Below the pieces are notes generated by a model. It had not been told where the DNA came from, ran no database searches, and saw nothing but the letters and a program-made list of their open reading frames with translations. 64,000 nucleotides of DNA from the sequence record NC_020851.1; one strand, written 5' to 3'. Both the position numbers and the translations under genes were made by a program. This document shows positions 23,803-54,607 of the stretch, piece by piece (within the stretch, counting starts at the first letter, position 1; every line of letters starts with the position of its first letter).

Positions 23803-23913
23803 TTGGTGAATTCCTGATGACTTAACTACAATACACGATTTTGAGGTCTGTGCCGAAACCTTGTGCCACTTTGTCCGACTGTCCACTCGCGGCTGACCTG
23901 AGTATCATTTAGT
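23803..23913 (-). promoter_or_regulatory. early promoter cassette B
   Basis: -10 TATTGT 23828-33; dyad 23865-83; near-identical to C/D/E. Confidence 0.75.
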
Positions 23914-25762: not shown

Positions 25763-26002
25763 TTAGTCTATAAGTTCTTTCATCATTTCGTTTACTTCTA
25801 TTCCGTTGATATTAACATCGTCCCACTTACAACTGTCTGGTGTTTCTTTACTTCCGGCATCGTGAATCATACTTACCAGATGTCCATAAGTTCCACCATC
25901 CCTTGCAACATCACATGCCAGTTCATACAAACCAGGATCATTTCCGATCCAGAGAGCAACATTCCAGGTCTCCCAATTTGTCCAACCGTTGTAACCTTGC
26001 AT
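25763..26002 (-). CDS. conserved phage early protein
   Basis: MQGYNGWTNWETWNVALWIGND, a motif common in phage early genes. Confidence 0.75.
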   Translation of the reverse strand: MQGYNGWTNWETWNVALWIGNDPGLYELACDVARDGGTYGHLVSMIHDAGSKETPDSCKWDDVNINGIEVNEMMKELID

Positions 26003-26082
26003 TTGGTGAATTCCTGATGACTTAACTACAATACACGATTTTGAGGTCTGTGCTCATTTATTGTGCCACTAATACTTTTGGC
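26003..26082 (-). promoter_or_regulatory. early promoter cassette E
   Basis: -10 TATTGT 26028-33; dyad 26065-82; leader identical to B. Confidence 0.75.
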
Positions 26083-26094
26083 ACATAGTATCAC

Positions 26095-26313
26095 TTACAC
26101 AGTACGAATCGTGATACTACACATTAACTCATGAGCAACATCGATAGAGTCATCTTCTCTCACAATTGGAAGATTAGTATCAACAAACTCCGAAGCAAGA
26201 TCCATCATTAACTCATGCATTCTTTCATCTCCTGCTGCAAACTCAGCAAACTCTTCAGAGAATCCGGATGCTAACCTACGAATTGCTTCGTCATGTACAT
26301 TGAGAACGGTCAT
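26095..26313 (-). CDS. small acidic early protein
   Basis: 72-aa ORF. Confidence 0.7.
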   Translation of the reverse strand: MTVLNVHDEAIRRLASGFSEEFAEFAAGDERMHELMMDLASEFVDTNLPIVREDDSIDVAHELMCSITIRTV

Positions 26314-26353
26314 TTTGAAAAAAAGTGTTAGTTAGTGAACGAATGAATGAATG

Positions 26354-26518
26354 TTACTTAGCAGGGAAATTCTTACACACAGCATCACATAAAATCTTCA
26401 CAAGTTCTTCATCATAATTGACATCATACTGTGCAAAGTAATCAGTGATGATACAATCAATGTCTTCCATCAATTGTTCACGACTAGTTAACATGTCAAG
26501 TGTGTCGTTGTTAATCAT
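26354..26518 (-). CDS. small acidic early protein (54 aa)
   Basis: manual translation MINNDTLDMLTSREQLMEDIDCIITDYF. Confidence 0.6.
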   Translation of the reverse strand: MINNDTLDMLTSREQLMEDIDCIITDYFAQYDVNYDEELVKILCDAVCKNFPAK

Positions 26519-26525
26519 TTTTAGG

Positions 26526-26605
26526 GTGAATTCCTGATGACTTAACTACAATACATGATTTTAGGGTCATGTGCTCATATAGTGTGCCACTTCCCCGACT
26601 GTCAC
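26526..26605 (-). promoter_or_regulatory. early promoter cassette F
   Basis: -10 TATTGT 26548-53; dyad 26586-603. Confidence 0.75.
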
Positions 26606-26680
26606 ACTCATAAGGTCTCTCTATGGGTCTTATAAGGTCTTCTAATGCCCTCTCGTGACAGTCGGGGAAGTGGCACACTA
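26580..26680. repeat. perfect 26-bp inverted repeat, 49-bp spacer
   Basis: TAGTGTGCCACTTCCCCGACTGTCAC (26580-605) and its reverse complement (26655-680). Confidence 0.95.
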
Positions 26681-26712
26681 ATACACGTCTACGGTCTCTC
26701 TGATGCTAATAT
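26657..26712 (+). promoter_or_regulatory. rightward copy of the early promoter
   Basis: dyad 26657-74 then 32 bp then TGc-TAATAT 26707-12, same spacing as cassette F. Confidence 0.5.
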
Positions 26713-26830
26713 CAACATTCTCGTCACCTTCCAGTCCTAAGATATCATTCCAATCAATATCTTTAAGATTTAAATCATCATAACACTCGATGTCTAATGT
26801 AACACTTATGATGCGTTTGTGTGCGTACAT
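26678..26830 (-). CDS. small acidic protein (50 aa)
   Basis: manual translation MYAHKRIISVTLDIECYDDLNLKDIDWNDILGLEGDENVDISIRETVDVY. Confidence 0.6.
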   Translation of the reverse strand: MYAHKRIISVTLDIECYDDLNLKDIDWNDILGLEGDENVDISIRETVDVY

Positions 26831-26906
26831 GTGTATCTCGTATGATGTGTGTTATAATGTGTTATGTGTACACATATCTCGTAATGTATACATGTATCTC
26901 GTAACG

Positions 26907-27110
26907 TTATGCGTAATGTTTATACGCAAGCTCTACGTAATCACATGTATCTCGTGCGTACTCATCATCTATCTCGTATGTATCCTGGGTGTTATGTGTA
27001 TCTCGTAGTGTATATGTATCTCGTGCATAATGCTCACACATCTCGTCTTTATAATACGTATAAGACTCGTTGTTATAATGATACTGTAACTCGTGGTCTT
27101 CGTAATACAT
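26907..27110 (-). CDS. Tyr/Asp-rich small protein overlapping the TCTCG array
   Basis: 67-aa ORF ending EYARDTCDYVELAYKHYA, resembling small ORFs I recall from other cyanomyoviruses. Confidence 0.5.
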   Translation of the reverse strand: MYYEDHELQYHYNNESYTYYKDEMCEHYARDTYTLRDTHNTQDTYEIDDEYARDTCDYVELAYKHYA

Positions 27111-27200
27111 GGGTCTCGTCGAGATTTGTATGTTACTTGTATATTATACAGACATCTCGCACGTATGTCAAGTATGATCTCGTGCGGCATTCATAAGCAT

Positions 27201-27208
27201 TATTTATA
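27201..27208 (-). promoter_or_regulatory. possible T4 late promoter TATAAATA
   Basis: exact match; a second at 27487-94; both in AT-rich context. Confidence 0.4.
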
Positions 27209-27257
27209 AGTCTCGACGAGAAAAATGTGTGGGTCTCAGAGTTTTTATGCGGGGTGC

Positions 27258-27286
27258 TTGACAAAACTGCCGTCTTGTGGTAGAGT
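27258..27286 (+). promoter_or_regulatory. rightward sigma70 promoter with no downstream ORF
   Basis: TTGACA-17-TAGAGT with extended -10 TG. Confidence 0.7.
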
Positions 27287-27308
27287 GCGGGTAAAGGTCA
27301 CAAGTCTC

Positions 27309-27412
27309 AGAAGGTTTATAAGAGTATTAGAGAAGGTTTATAAGAGTATTAGAGAAGGTTTATAAGAGTATTAGAGAAGGTTTATAAGAGTATTAGAGAA
27401 GGTTTATAAGAG
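27309..27412 (+). repeat. 22-bp tandem repeat x4.7 (iteron-like)
   Basis: AGAAGGTTTATAAGAGTATTAG at 27309, 27331, 27353, 27375 plus 16-bp partial at 27397. Confidence 0.95.
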
Positions 27413-27413
27413 G

Positions 27414-27464
27414 TTTTCCACACATAAAAGACACTTATCCACAGAAATAACCCACTTATCCACA
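27414..27464 (+). promoter_or_regulatory. three DnaA-box consensus sites at 21-bp spacing
   Basis: TTTTCCACA 27414-22, TTATCCACA 27435-43, TTATCCACA 27456-64. Confidence 0.75.
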
Positions 27465-27570
27465 GACTTGTTGGAAAACAGTTTTATATTTATAATCATA
27501 TTTAAAACCTATTTTTTAACTCATAATGTAACAATCGATACAAAATACATAGTTTAGTCATGTAATCAAT

Positions 27571-27600
27571 AGTATAAGGCATCTAGGAACACTTATGGGT
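27571..27600 (-). promoter_or_regulatory. leftward promoter facing the DnaA boxes
   Basis: TAGATGCCTTATACT, shared with promoters at ~28500 and ~28760. Confidence 0.45.
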
Positions 27601-27791
27601 TAGTTGACATGAATAGTTAGAGTTTTACCATCTGATGACAAACCTATGGAGCAGTGAGTGAGTTCCGGTCTAATCTCTCTATGACTAACAGTAGCACCCT
27701 TGTGATAATGGGACGAATGATCAACAACTAACTCTTCAACACTTGATAGTATTGTTGCATAGATTTCATTTGAATCAATTATGTACTTCAT
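27600..27791 (-). CDS. hypothetical protein
   Basis: 63-aa ORF overlapping upstream stop (ATGA). Confidence 0.6.
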   Translation of the reverse strand: MKYIIDSNEIYATILSSVEELVVDHSSHYHKGATVSHREIRPELTHCSIGLSSDGKTLTIHVN

Positions 27792-28510
27792 TTTTTATCA
27801 CCAAATAGTTTGTTCATATAATCAAGCACATCATCATTAACAGTATCATTAATAGATGCATCTACTACATCATCAATAGCATTACCTGTCAATACACTCT
27901 TAGTTGCAGAAGCAGTAATTAGAAATGCCTTAAGTTTATCCTTCGTCTTATCTTCTTTCTTCTTTCTTTTTATGGCAACGATTTCATCAATACGACTTTG
28001 AATCTTTTCATTCAGAGTAGAATTAAATCCTACCTTTGACATATCATGCAATCTGAGGAATTCCTCAGATAAAGTTTCTCTCAGAAAGATTGGTGAATTG
28101 ATATAACAATCAATCAGATCATCAGGAAGATGAACATTCAAATATAATTTTGGATGACATGTGTTTTCATCATTCATATATAAAAACCCAGAACGATGAG
28201 TATCATAAATGGCACGAAGGATTTCTTCATCATCAGATGTTTTTGCCCATTCACCAATTATTGTTCTATCTTCTTTCCAAACATAAAGCAAACAAATAGG
28301 TCCTCGCCTCTTAGAATACTGTGCTTTCCATTCAGGAAGAGAATGTTCTTTATAAATTTCTGACGTAATTGTTGCTTCTTTAATAACATACAGAATTAAT
28401 TCTTTTTCTGTTGCAAATAATGGGTCTGGGTCTGGAACTGAATTAGATTCGGTCTGATGAGAAAAGAAGTTAAACATGTGTTTGTTTTGTATGTGATTAT
28501 TATAGGGCAT
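27788..28510 (-). CDS. hypothetical protein (240 aa)
   Basis: long ORF behind TATAAT promoter at ~28499. Confidence 0.7.
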   Translation of the reverse strand: MPYNNHIQNKHMFNFFSHQTESNSVPDPDPLFATEKELILYVIKEATITSEIYKEHSLPEWKAQYSKRRGPICLLYVWKEDRTIIGEWAKTSDDEEILRAIYDTHRSGFLYMNDENTCHPKLYLNVHLPDDLIDCYINSPIFLRETLSEEFLRLHDMSKVGFNSTLNEKIQSRIDEIVAIKRKKKEDKTKDKLKAFLITASATKSVLTGNAIDDVVDASINDTVNDDVLDYMNKLFGDKK

Positions 28511-28541
28511 CTATGTGCCCTATGGTGGTTCAGTGGTCAGC

Positions 28542-28732
28542 TTATGAATTGGCAAGCATATGATATTGCAGAATGGTAAGAAATGTTATAAGAGGAAGAA
28601 ACATAATAATTCCTTGTAAGACCTGATTTTTAATCATTTCCATTACAAAAAAATCCATCCAACAACAAGACCGGTAAAAAACAGGACAACTGCCACATGA
28701 CCAATTGCCTGTAAAAGAATTCCAAAATCCAT
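28542..28732 (-). CDS. small two-TM membrane protein (frame break ~28650), paralog of 34045-34242
   Basis: MDFGILLQAIG...MIKNQVLQGIIMFLPLITF. Confidence 0.55.
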
Positions 28733-28757
28733 AATTGAGGTTGTTTGGTATGTAATG

Positions 28758-28813
28758 AGTATAAGGCATCTATGTGCCCTGTGGAACGTTAGGTGGACAG
28801 TTTAGGGATTGTC
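28758..28813 (-). promoter_or_regulatory. early promoter with dyad
   Basis: -10 TATACT 28758-63; dyad 28796-813. Confidence 0.65.
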
Positions 28814-28938
28814 TAATTTTGATTTCGTATCAGTTGACTATCATTTTTTTTACAATACCATTAAGAAAAAATCCAACGATAAAAAAGAATATGACCGAAA
28901 TTGGATCCATGATTGTTTGTTTGAACTGAAGTCATCAT

Positions 28939-28989
28939 ACAATAAAAACCACCCCTGTGAAAAGGTGGTGTGACAGTTCTTAATCTGTC
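28939..28989 (-). promoter_or_regulatory. early promoter with dyad
   Basis: -10 TATTGT; dyad GACAGTTCTTAATCTGTC 28972-89. Confidence 0.55.
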
Positions 28990-29228
28990 TCATAGATACT
29001 CTTTCGACTCTTTACATAAGTAAGATCCTTCCATTGATGCGGATAGCACAATAACAAAGTATGAATGAACTTATGTTTCTCCTCACGGGTATACTCACAG
29101 TTTGGTTTTGGTTTTACTCCTGTCTCAATCGTAATGTACAAACTATCAACAAAATAAACCCATCCTTCATGTATACTACCATTCTTATTCCATCTTACAT
29201 AATCATTCACCTTTGGTTGATAAGTCAT
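28980..29228 (-). CDS. conserved cyanophage hypothetical protein
   Basis: 82-aa ORF YQPKVNDYVRW...EGWVYF. Confidence 0.7.
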   Translation of the reverse strand: MTYQPKVNDYVRWNKNGSIHEGWVYFVDSLYITIETGVKPKPNCEYTREEKHKFIHTLLLCYPHQWKDLTYVKSRKSIYETD

Positions 29229-43099: not shown

Positions 43100-43599
43100 G
43101 AGTTGTCCTCCATTTGGTTGAATGCGTCAATCAGTTCCTGGCTGCCTGATTCTGTGATTAGTCGTTGAAGTTTGTCTTTAGGCGTTTCGATAAACGCCCA
43201 CTTACGACCGTTGATTTCGCCCTCGACATCGCCACCGACAGTGCCATAGACATTGCCTTTGACATCGCCATAGACATGGCCATCGACCTCGCCTCCGATA
43301 CTGCCTTTGACACTGCCTATGACACCGCCACCGACATTGCCATGGACAATGCCATAGACGTTGCCTCCGATTCCGCCTTCGACATTGCCTCCGATATTAC
43401 TTTTGATATCGCCATCGACAGCGCCATAGATATTGTCCTTGACATCGCCATAGATACTGCCCTCGACATCGCCTTTGACATCGCCTCTGACACCGCCATT
43501 GACAGTGCCATTGACAGTGTGGATTCTCCAGCCACAGACATCCGTGTGATAGAAACCAACAAGCTTTAGAGCTTCTCTAAGTGTTATTTGTTTGGTCAT
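43096..43599 (-). CDS. G-x-V-x repeat (beta-helix-like) protein
   Basis: ~25 tetrapeptide repeats GDVK/GDVE/GNVY. Confidence 0.7.
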   Translation of the reverse strand: MTKQITLREALKLVGFYHTDVCGWRIHTVNGTVNGGVRGDVKGDVEGSIYGDVKDNIYGAVDGDIKSNIGGNVEGGIGGNVYGIVHGNVGGGVIGSVKGSIGGEVDGHVYGDVKGNVYGTVGGDVEGEINGRKWAFIETPKDKLQRLITESGSQELIDAFNQMEDNS

Positions 43600-54215: not shown

Positions 54216-54217
54216 AA

Positions 54218-54292
54218 TACCCGTGATCGGACTCGAACCGATACTGTCGAAATTTTAAGTTTCGTGTCTACTGCCAATTGGACTACACGGGC
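54218..54292 (-). tRNA. tRNA-Leu(UAA), short variable loop, no CCA
   Basis: GCCCGTG/CACGGGT acceptor, CGAAA-CTTAAAA-TTTCG, TTCGAGT T-loop, A73. Confidence 0.85.
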
Positions 54293-54296
54293 ATAA

Positions 54297-54430
54297 CATT
54301 ACACTTATCCGTATGCTATGTGGGCATCACACCCAGTATACTGACAGTTTGTAATGGAGCAAAAAGAAAGTAACCAACTCTCTAGATCACAGTGTGGTTA
54401 GCACCGTCGCGGGCGAGCTCATTCCCCGTC
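54297..54430 (-). ncRNA. structured ncRNA inside the tRNA cluster (possibly manA motif)
   Basis: TAACCA/TGGTTA and CATTACA/TGTAATG stems with nested hairpins; manA identity is from memory only. Confidence 0.5.
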
Positions 54431-54433
54431 TAA

Positions 54434-54506
54434 TGCAGGTTGTGGGAATTGAACCCACCTTCGCCGTTTTATGAGAACGGTCCATTCACCAGATTGGTAA
54501 ACCTGC
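54434..54506 (-). tRNA. tRNA with CAU anticodon (elongator Met or Ile2)
   Basis: GCAGGTT/AACCTGC, CCGTT-CTCATAA-AACGG, TTCAATT. Confidence 0.85.
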
Positions 54507-54509
54507 AGA

Positions 54510-54597
54510 TACTCGTGGATCGATTTGAACGATCTCAAAGGCACTAATCGGGTGCAAAGAGTTTATAAGACTCCCCTGACTACCAAGTCTCACGAGC
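54510..54597 (-). tRNA. atypical tRNA with UAU (Ile) anticodon and long variable arm
   Basis: GCTCGTG/CACGAGT, GGAGT-CTTATAA-ACTCT, GCAC/GTGC variable stem, GATCG-TTCAAAT-CGATC. Confidence 0.7.
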
Positions 54598-54607
54598 AGA
54601 TGATGAA

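Follow-up and report, generated by a model that had tools for sequence, protein, structure and literature searches.

The stretch of DNA examined here, called the window throughout, comprises 64,000 nucleotides of sequence record NC_020851.1, and the element under study is a cluster of three DnaA boxes (the trio) near position 27,400, a candidate site for recruitment of the host replication initiator by a phage. The source is Synechococcus phage S-SKS1 (NC_020851/HQ633071), to which window 26000-29000 gave a 100% megablast match. This member of the genus Llyrvirus has a genome of 208,007 bp and Synechococcus WH7803 as its host; window positions equal positions in NC_020851 minus 124,000. The annotation is of the T4 type and includes gp23, tail sheath, gp43 polymerase, gp41/gp61, gp45, gp44/62 and gp32, together with gp59, UvsX/UvsY, gp46/47, gp55 and gp33. 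Nearly all annotated genes are on the minus strand. The boxes are found within 490 bp that hold no annotated genes (27111-27599), amid a long run of small hypothetical early-type genes. Four types of repeat, namely the ATCTCGT motif, the TCTCGWCGAGA palindrome, a 22-mer and the DnaA trio, crowd one stretch of ~750 bp in this 208-kb genome (Table 1).

Table 1. Features of the S-SKS1 control region, in window coordinates
Feature	Position	Strand	Remarks
Anchor gene, 50-aa acidic early protein (phrog_12516)	26678-26830	-	PHROG match 8e-24
Nine ATCTCGT motifs	26835-27183	+	9/14 of the genome's + strand copies; repeat families D2-D5
Palindrome TCTCGWCGAGA	27114-27124 and 27211-27221		Sole two copies in 208 kb; inverted repeat I2
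Leftward promoter TTGACA-17-TATAAT	27143-27171	-	12/12 match to sigma70 consensus
T4-type late-promoter motif TATAAATA	27201-27208	-	Genome scan
Rightward promoter TTGACA-17-TAGAGT, extended -10 TG	27258-27286	+	Points at repeats, boxes and AT-rich tract
Iteron-like perfect tandem repeat AGAAGGTTTATAAGAGTATTAG	27309-27412	+	22 bp x 4.7 copies; unique in genome
DnaA box 1	27414-27422	+	TTTTCCACA, exact TTWTCCACA match; kept in 20 distinct variants
DnaA box 2	27435-27443	+	TTATCCACA, exact TTWTCCACA match; kept in 20 distinct variants
DnaA box 3	27456-27464	+	TTATCCACA, exact TTWTCCACA match; kept in 20 distinct variants
Decayed inverted fourth box	27469-27478	-	TGTTGGAAAA, 4 nt past box 3
AT-rich tract, candidate unwinding element	27478-27560		82.5% AT over 80 bp
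Second late-promoter motif TATAAATA	27487-27494	-	Inside AT-rich tract beside boxes; genome scan

The DnaA-box trio and its immediate surroundings

The three boxes start at exact intervals of 21 bp (21 and 21 from start to start), as the initial annotation had reported. Together they place three exact matches within 51 bp and form the sole cluster in the genome. That annotation had also proposed a genome-wide count of TTWTCCACA as a measure of significance, and here the result was divided: the clustering is exceptional, while the motif as such is not enriched, with 9 copies in the 208,007-bp genome against 7.9 +/- 2.4 in Markov-1 simulations. Within the window there are 6 copies against 2.8 expected. 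All six copies in the genome outside the trio are singletons, none of 40 simulated genomes contained even a pair of the motif within 60 bp, and the chance expectation for same-strand triples at helical-multiple spacings is ~2.7e-7. The description of the box as typical of cyanobacteria also holds, the trio sequence matching the cyanobacterial DnaA-box consensus TTTTCCACA (PMC4674748).

The sequence between the boxes had been called unrelated, which is an overstatement. Spacers CATAAAAGACAC and GAAATAACCCAC agree at 7/12 positions, the 14-mer CACTTATCCACAGA is common to boxes 2 and 3, and TRF detects a 21-bp tandem repeat over the boxes with 81% matches, so that the three 21-mers resemble a diverged tandem repeat. 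Because the spacers are related, the 14-mer is shared and a repeat is detected, the window alone cannot tell selection from tandem duplication. Relatives carrying the trio allow the two to be separated. Across 20 distinct trio variants the boxes differ at position 3 alone (A/T, the W of the consensus) and the spacers have diverged; in the nine 12/12 variants, boxes are 95.9% and spacers 45.7% identical between lineages. The earlier proposal of selection on the 9-mers themselves is borne out to this extent: because the boxes are near-invariant across relatives whose spacers have diverged, the alignments indicate that the 9-mers are under selection as such. The spacings seen among trio loci are 21, 22 or 31 bp, all approximately whole helical turns. 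A lack of conservation of the boxes and their spacing, which the initial annotation had named as a refutation, was looked for in the relatives, and the outcome does not refute the proposal. A spacing limited in this way points to a protein that would bind on one face of duplex DNA.

A functionless chance product of recent tandem duplication would account for the TRF repeat and for the 58% identity of the window spacers. It would not account for perfect boxes kept across lineages whose spacers are ~46% identical, for the failure to find any decayed trio, or for an expectation of only ~3e-7 chance triples. The conservation data already contradict this explanation, and we regard it as scarcely credible.

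Downstream of box 3 is the remnant of an inverted fourth box. It had been described as imperfect at approximately position 27469, and TGTTGGAAAA does differ from a box by two mismatches (or one indel). It is homologous to a perfect inverted box, TGTGGAAAA, that follows box 3 after 4 nt in one lineage. The perfect form occupies the fourth-box position in loci L038, L048 and L061 and also in L068, L081 and L086; L087 and L088 have TGTTGAAAA there, L122 has lost the box, and versions with one or two mismatches occur elsewhere. In relatives the inverted box, of varying quality, starts 3-4 nt past box 3. The AT-rich tract reported after the boxes is real as well, with a composition over 80 bp that is reached by 0.14% of genome windows and an onset ~15 nt past box 3. 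Three tandem 12-mers are found in the tract (27485-27496, 27497-27508 and 27509-27520; matches 9/12 and 7/12). The sequence 3' of the boxes is AT-rich in all four sequence clusters related to S-SKS1 (0.78-0.80 versus a background of 0.58-0.64), and within the S-SKS1 family the side is constant, the tract always being 3' of the boxes read as TTATCCACA. In Escherichia coli oriC, box R1 and the unwinding element have the same polarity as the phage boxes and their AT-rich tract.

On the other side of the boxes are the rightward promoter and the 22-bp repeat array. A rightward promoter-like site, consisting of a TTGACA/T hexamer and a -10-like element, is present at the equivalent place in 66/66 of the gene-anchored relatives described below, and also in phages S-SRM01, S-T4 and S-SCSM1. 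The + strand of the array contains 29 G and 0 C, and no 100-nt control window attained its GC skew of +1.0. In relatives the repeats that precede the boxes differ from one another in unit and in number of copies; their periods are 11, 12, 22, 23 or 33 bp, and a core like AGGTTTAT or AGGAGGT is kept. GC skew over the array is positive in 39/50 distinct relatives, with a mean of +0.17 versus -0.12 for background.

The rightward promoter would place the boxes within a transcript, and the 9-mers could in principle be an RNA motif in that transcript, or be recognised by a phage-encoded protein, their identity with DnaA boxes being coincidental. In keeping with this, the 9-mers are in the transcribed region, they are flanked by repeat families presumably bound by phage factors, and the sequence shared by boxes 2 and 3 extends to 14 nt. 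However, the predicted 233-nt rightward RNA has no stable fold, being less stable than shuffled sequences (z = +1.5), and Rfam at a permissive threshold gave spurious microRNA and snoRNA matches alone, none of them over the boxes. A structured non-coding RNA is unlikely at this transcript given the weakness of its fold. Helical phasing, moreover, is a property of duplex DNA, the 20 variants keep the DnaA consensus and vary at its A/T-tolerant position alone, and this trio of 9-mers is also a common feature of cyanobacterial genomes. We consider a phage protein or RNA motif very unlikely. Based on the sequences compared, S-SKS1 probably recruits host DnaA at the trio.

Distribution of the trio and exchange of cassettes

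Relatives were collected in two ways. For the box-anchored sample, IMG/VR was scanned for three boxes at 21-bp spacing, which gave at least 115 contigs in 45 sequence clusters; among the matches listed, 4/45 clusters are related to S-SKS1. For the gene-anchored sample, the 50-aa protein of the anchor gene was aligned and 80 of 215 relatives were taken, 66 of which had at least 750 bp on the relevant side. A perfect trio is found in 29/66 of these gene-anchored relatives, with centre-to-centre spacings of 21/21, 22/21 or 31/21, and one relative has four boxes at 21/22/21. Presence of the trio is all-or-none, with 29 perfect and 0 decayed versions among the 66 loci.

Thirteen of the 37 trio-less relatives have an inverted repeat, ATTCTCAAT(N)ATTGAGAAT, in the same slot (L294, L311, L315, L317, L318, L320, L323, L324, L327, L328, L330, L332 and L334). 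The cassette is also carried by S-SRM01 (L335) and in partial form by S-T4 (L336). As a terminator this palindrome was ruled out on either strand, and a literature search for its two arms returned unrelated primer-type matches alone. A + strand open reading frame (ORF) of at least 110 aa is located downstream of the promoter in 16/22 relatives that have neither trio nor palindrome. Where these ORFs were read by eye, they come directly after the promoter and repeats and are GIY-YIG or HNH homing-endonuclease genes; such calls were made by eye in metagenomic loci, and the HNH genes of S-CAM7 and S-SRM01 are taken from the record annotation. Homing-endonuclease genes replace the DnaA boxes in some relatives, and in one HNH variant a lone box remnant survives with 8/9 matches, ATTTCCACA. 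Several gene-anchored relatives (~8-10 by eye) contain degenerate xxTCCACAG repeats with an 11-nt period. Judging from these loci, replacement of the trio is wholesale, does not proceed by decay, and is often tied to homing-endonuclease genes.

In many relatives such homing-endonuclease genes are free-standing and occupy the otherwise empty strand downstream of the rightward promoter, as in L121 (4850-6200), L122 (4760-5800) and L133 (4150-4960), and as with the annotated HNH genes of S-CAM7 (L134 4444-5142) and S-SRM01 (L335 1403-1984).

The isolates S-SCSM1, S-CAM7, S-SRM01 and S-T4 all carry the anchor gene, and the first two illustrate the range of arrangements. S-SCSM1 (NC_070962, L338 reverse strand) has a two-box site at the homologous place, ~280-305 nt upstream of gp004, which reads TTCTCCACA, a 3-nt gap and TTTTCCACA, then TGTTAGAAAA and an AT tract. 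One of its boxes is exact and the other has one mismatch. Ahead of the boxes are 4-5 degenerate repeats with a period of 11 nt, an arrangement reminiscent of low-affinity DnaA sites arrayed beside a strong site that nucleates them. In S-CAM7, the closest isolate at the DNA level, promoter, tandem repeats and HNH gene are arranged analogously, without boxes.

These exchanges bear on the possibility that the trio is a DnaA-dependent transcription switch. Phased DnaA would then block or modulate polymerase that had started at the rightward promoter, and perhaps also polymerase from the leftward late promoter (27487-27494), so as to limit antisense read-through into the - strand genes or to set expression of a downstream homing endonuclease by the DnaA state of the host. 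The boxes are located ~120-170 nt inside the region transcribed from a promoter that all 66 relatives keep, and the operator-like ATTCTCAAT..ATTGAGAAT cassettes in the same slot suggest interchangeable factor-binding sites. Further downstream, a + strand ORF of 110 aa or more is present in up to 12/29 trio loci, the GIY-YIG genes of L122 and L123 being confirmed instances, and cyanobacterial chromosomes have an identical trio outside the dnaN-linked origin. DnaA roadblocks occur in E. coli, and DnaA reportedly regulates the lambda pR promoter, a finding ascribed to Glinkowska et al. 2003. However, S-SKS1 itself has no downstream + strand gene to regulate, a roadblock requires neither strict helical phasing nor an invariably adjacent AT tract, and presence of the trio is uncorrelated with presence of an endonuclease gene. 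Such a switch is therefore an unlikely, if still serious, explanation. Reading the locus as an origin and reading it as a site of transcription control are not mutually exclusive.

Other features of the region

Going downstream from the leftward promoter, the anchor gene is the first that is conserved, and it serves as a syntenic marker of the whole element, its homologues being at an equal offset in all lineages. Its protein is represented by 247 protein clusters in metagenomes, some of them on contigs of ~200 kb. The leftward promoter is one of eight perfect sigma70 consensus promoters in S-SKS1, all on the coding (-) strand, and is kept in relatives. Copies of the TCTCGWCGAGA palindrome flank it on both sides, and many more copies surround the same promoter in relatives; from its sequence the pair looks like a putative operator for a repressor of early transcription. 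The nine ATCTCGT motifs are in a single orientation with irregular spacings of 18-53 bp, and overlap the annotated ORF SWZG_00191 (26907-27110, -), which encodes 67 aa without a family match and may be spurious. The late-promoter motif TATAAATA occurs 21 times on the - strand of the genome and 0 times on the + strand. A terminator scan found none, and the sole terminator-like hairpin is weak, at -6.9 kcal/mol.

Several other repeats and genes were noted in the window. A perfect inverted repeat of 26 nt with a 49-nt spacer (26580-26605 / 26655-26680) is located between small genes. Its left flank has related intergenic copies at 26005-26070 and 23805-23888 and several copies in relatives, and the repeat may be a repeated hairpin, a terminator or a small mobile element. 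A tRNA cluster at 54217-54598 contains Leu-taa and Met-cat, of which the record annotates tRNA-Leu alone; a 91-nt call in the same cluster was labelled tRNA-Ile(tat) and has an unusual anticodon position. An imperfect long tandem repeat of 12/36 bp (25 and 8 copies) at 43217-43516 falls within a large tail-fibre gene region (record 172009-177714).

A candidate origin activated by transcription and host DnaA

We read the trio as a host-DnaA-assisted, transcription-activated phage replication origin, one of several origins or an optional one, and give this reading a probability of roughly 45%. If host DnaA is recruited here, the sequence context makes a replication origin the most likely purpose of the site. 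The three boxes and the decayed inverted fourth would constitute a binding platform for the host initiator within the main repeat-dense control region of the phage. In the predicted course of events, which would run through DnaA binding, R-loop formation, unwinding and initiation, host RNA polymerase would start at the rightward promoter and transcribe the repeat array. Because this transcript is G-rich and C-free, R-loop formation would be favoured, such RNA being prone to persist on its template. The evidence for a lasting hybrid of this kind is indirect, consisting of the 29 G and 0 C on the non-template strand and the lack of structure in the RNA. DnaA bound at 21-bp intervals on one face of the helix might then help to open the AT-rich tract or hold it open, and phage gp32, gp59 and gp41/gp61 could load at the opened tract, with gp43 extending the RNA.

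Comparison with characterised origins shows where this proposal fits known systems and where it departs from them. The T4 origins oriF and oriG, studied by Kreuzer and colleagues, and the ColE1 origin are transcription-activated or R-loop origins. As in oriF and oriG, the S-SKS1 promoter fires into a downstream candidate unwinding element, a rightward promoter-like site being present in 66/66 relatives with the AT tract downstream, and the phage encodes gp59, gp41, gp32 and gp43. T4 origins are not known to have DnaA boxes and use MotA-dependent middle promoters, whereas the S-SKS1 promoter is of the host sigma70 type and is ~190 nt from the AT tract. In phage lambda the DnaA sites are weak and are not known to form a phased consensus trio. 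Lambda does resemble the arrangement proposed here in that transcription from a phage promoter, itself acted on by the host initiator, activates an origin close by (PMC3017604). It differs in being temperate, in encoding an initiator of its own, O, whose gene contains the iterons, and in its use of host DnaB.

Theta origins of the iteron type, known from plasmids and plasmid prophages, offer a second comparison. RK2 oriV, P1 oriR, F oriS and pSC101 share with S-SKS1 the combination of DnaA boxes, direct repeats of ~22 bp and an AT-rich region of 12-13-mers (PMC4980987). Direct repeats of period 11, 22 or 33 bp adjoin the boxes in the phage loci, which favours an origin, and in S-SKS1 the tandem repeats have the period of about two helical turns that is expected of iterons (perfect 22 bp x 4.7). 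Unlike the plasmid origins, the element belongs to a lytic T4-like phage with its own replisome, its repeats vary between close relatives, its boxes are dispensable, and a conserved promoter transcribes through it. Pfam and PHROGs searches on the eight neighbouring ORFs gave no initiator or DNA-binding family and no Rep or winged-helix match, and the sole universally linked neighbour gene encodes the 50-aa acidic protein. Because no Rep gene was found nearby, membership in the iteron-origin class is only partial.

The likeness to bacterial oriC is also a partial one. Like oriC and its basal unwinding system (BUS), the element has boxes of cyanobacterial consensus that point to an adjacent AT-rich tract. 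The comparison with oriC boxes in the initial annotation suggested an origin, for which the site is no more than a candidate, and the likeness does not extend to class membership. The boxes are 21 bp apart and dnaA/dnaN are not adjacent; the BUS arrangement of a tandem pair of boxes separated by 3 bp or less is absent from S-SKS1, where the gaps are 12 bp, and a 3-bp gap is seen in isolate S-SCSM1 alone. The BUS rule further calls for three or more DnaA-trios (NAN) that begin within 16 nt of a box (PMC8287927). A run of this kind within 16 nt of the last box is missing in 11/12 variants, the window included, and 60% of shuffled flanks have at least three DnaA-trios, more than the real variants do. 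Because these two defining features were tested and are lacking, the element falls outside the oriC/BUS class and has no canonical oriC unwinding module.

The shortage of DnaA-trios and the missing initiator gene weigh against an origin, and so do several further results. A T4-type replisome has no need of DnaA or DnaB. Cumulative GC skew of both window and genome is monotonic with no switch at 151.4 kb, a measure made uninformative here by the placement of almost every gene on a single strand. At fourfold-degenerate sites, GC and AT skew in bins of 10 kb is noisy and has no switch at 150-160 kb. In the 37/66 relatives that do not carry a perfect trio, none was found by a search that tolerated two mismatches per box and any spacing of 19-33. 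Because these include phages ~95% identical in their flanks (L132 and L133), the DnaA-box module is, by this comparison, optional and dispensable. It is also because close relatives are without boxes that we describe the proposed origin as one of several or optional.

Trios outside the phage family add to the case against. The 21-bp TTTTCCACA trio is present in at least 120 genome contigs, among the matches listed mostly cyanobacterial (Microcoleus, Pseudanabaena and others). In four complete or long records these trios were examined as possible dnaN-linked origins and rejected, being located away from dnaN, either ~200-260 bp past guaA on its 3' side or close to a PPO-like gene. Because the trio is common in cyanobacterial genomes and is found away from dnaN, it is best regarded, on this distribution, as a generic module of high affinity for DnaA and not as an indicator of origins. 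In 37 unrelated viral clusters, Pfam searches of 111 ORFs beside trios identified no common neighbour gene, the matches being to ERF, RusA, terminases, portals and one RepA_C. AT polarity around trios in unrelated contigs follows no rule (15 vs 21, p = 0.31), and a consistent polarity is found in the S-SKS1 family alone. The cyanobacterial TTTTCCACA trios and the viral (G)TTATCCACA(G) trios thus have the motif, copy number and 21-bp phasing of S-SKS1, whereas their flanks and neighbouring genes are unrelated.

As an observation on the cyanobacteria themselves, TTTTCCACA x3 at 21 bp was found beyond guaA in two genera, Limnothrix and Capilliphycus (L173 6140-6190, L194 3446-3496). This suggests that the guaA-linked trio is a conserved cyanobacterial DnaA site outside the dnaN-linked origin.

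A generic DnaA module could also serve to manipulate the host DnaA pool. As a datA-like sink or a site of nucleotide exchange like the DnaA-reactivating sequences (DARS), the element would multiply with the phage genome and disturb host initiation. The layouts of DARS and datA, with adjacent boxes and IHF/Fis sites, differ from that of the phage element. DARS1, DARS2 and datA likewise group 3-5 boxes, among them two in opposite orientation separated by a few bp, and the E. coli DARS core consists of three boxes, two of them opposed at 5 bp (PMC6868365). The phage counterpart, three direct boxes with an opposed box 4 bp off, is perfect in one lineage (L038/L048/L061) and has 2 mismatches or an indel in the window, and the dispensable, polymorphic nature of the element is what might be expected of an accessory host-takeover function. 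Against this, there are just 3-4 sites per genome, the inverted box is decayed in most lineages including S-SKS1, the spacing and accessory sites differ from those of the chromosomal loci, and the AT tract, promoter and neighbouring repeats are left unexplained. We consider manipulation of the pool distinctly unlikely.

T4-like phages are commonly considered not to depend on the host initiator, and cyanomyovirus replication origins are essentially unmapped. Within the library that was searched, no paper was found to connect DnaA boxes with cyanophages. One review gives a single predicted theta origin, that of Syn9 (PMC2984593), and in silico predictions of DnaA-box origins exist for other lytic phages (e.g. 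PMC11512268). It is possible, although we hold it to be doubtful at present, that a widespread lineage of T4-like cyanophages (S-SKS1-like, with the two-box S-SCSM1) uses host DnaA at a transcription-primed origin of the R-loop type, the DnaA module being one among several cassettes for host factors that are interchanged at this locus, perhaps through the action of homing endonucleases. If this is true, phage DNA replication would be gated by the DnaA status of the host and, through that status, by the state of the cyanobacterium with respect to light and the cell cycle.

The ~750-bp locus provides a concrete target for origin mapping and for work on early control circuitry, and natural variants with and without boxes permit a comparative test. 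The modular evolution of non-coding control DNA is cleanly exemplified by the all-or-none swapping of cassettes beside homing-endonuclease genes. A strongly selected putative platform for host DnaA in abundant marine phages points to a direct link between the control of host replication and the development of the phage.

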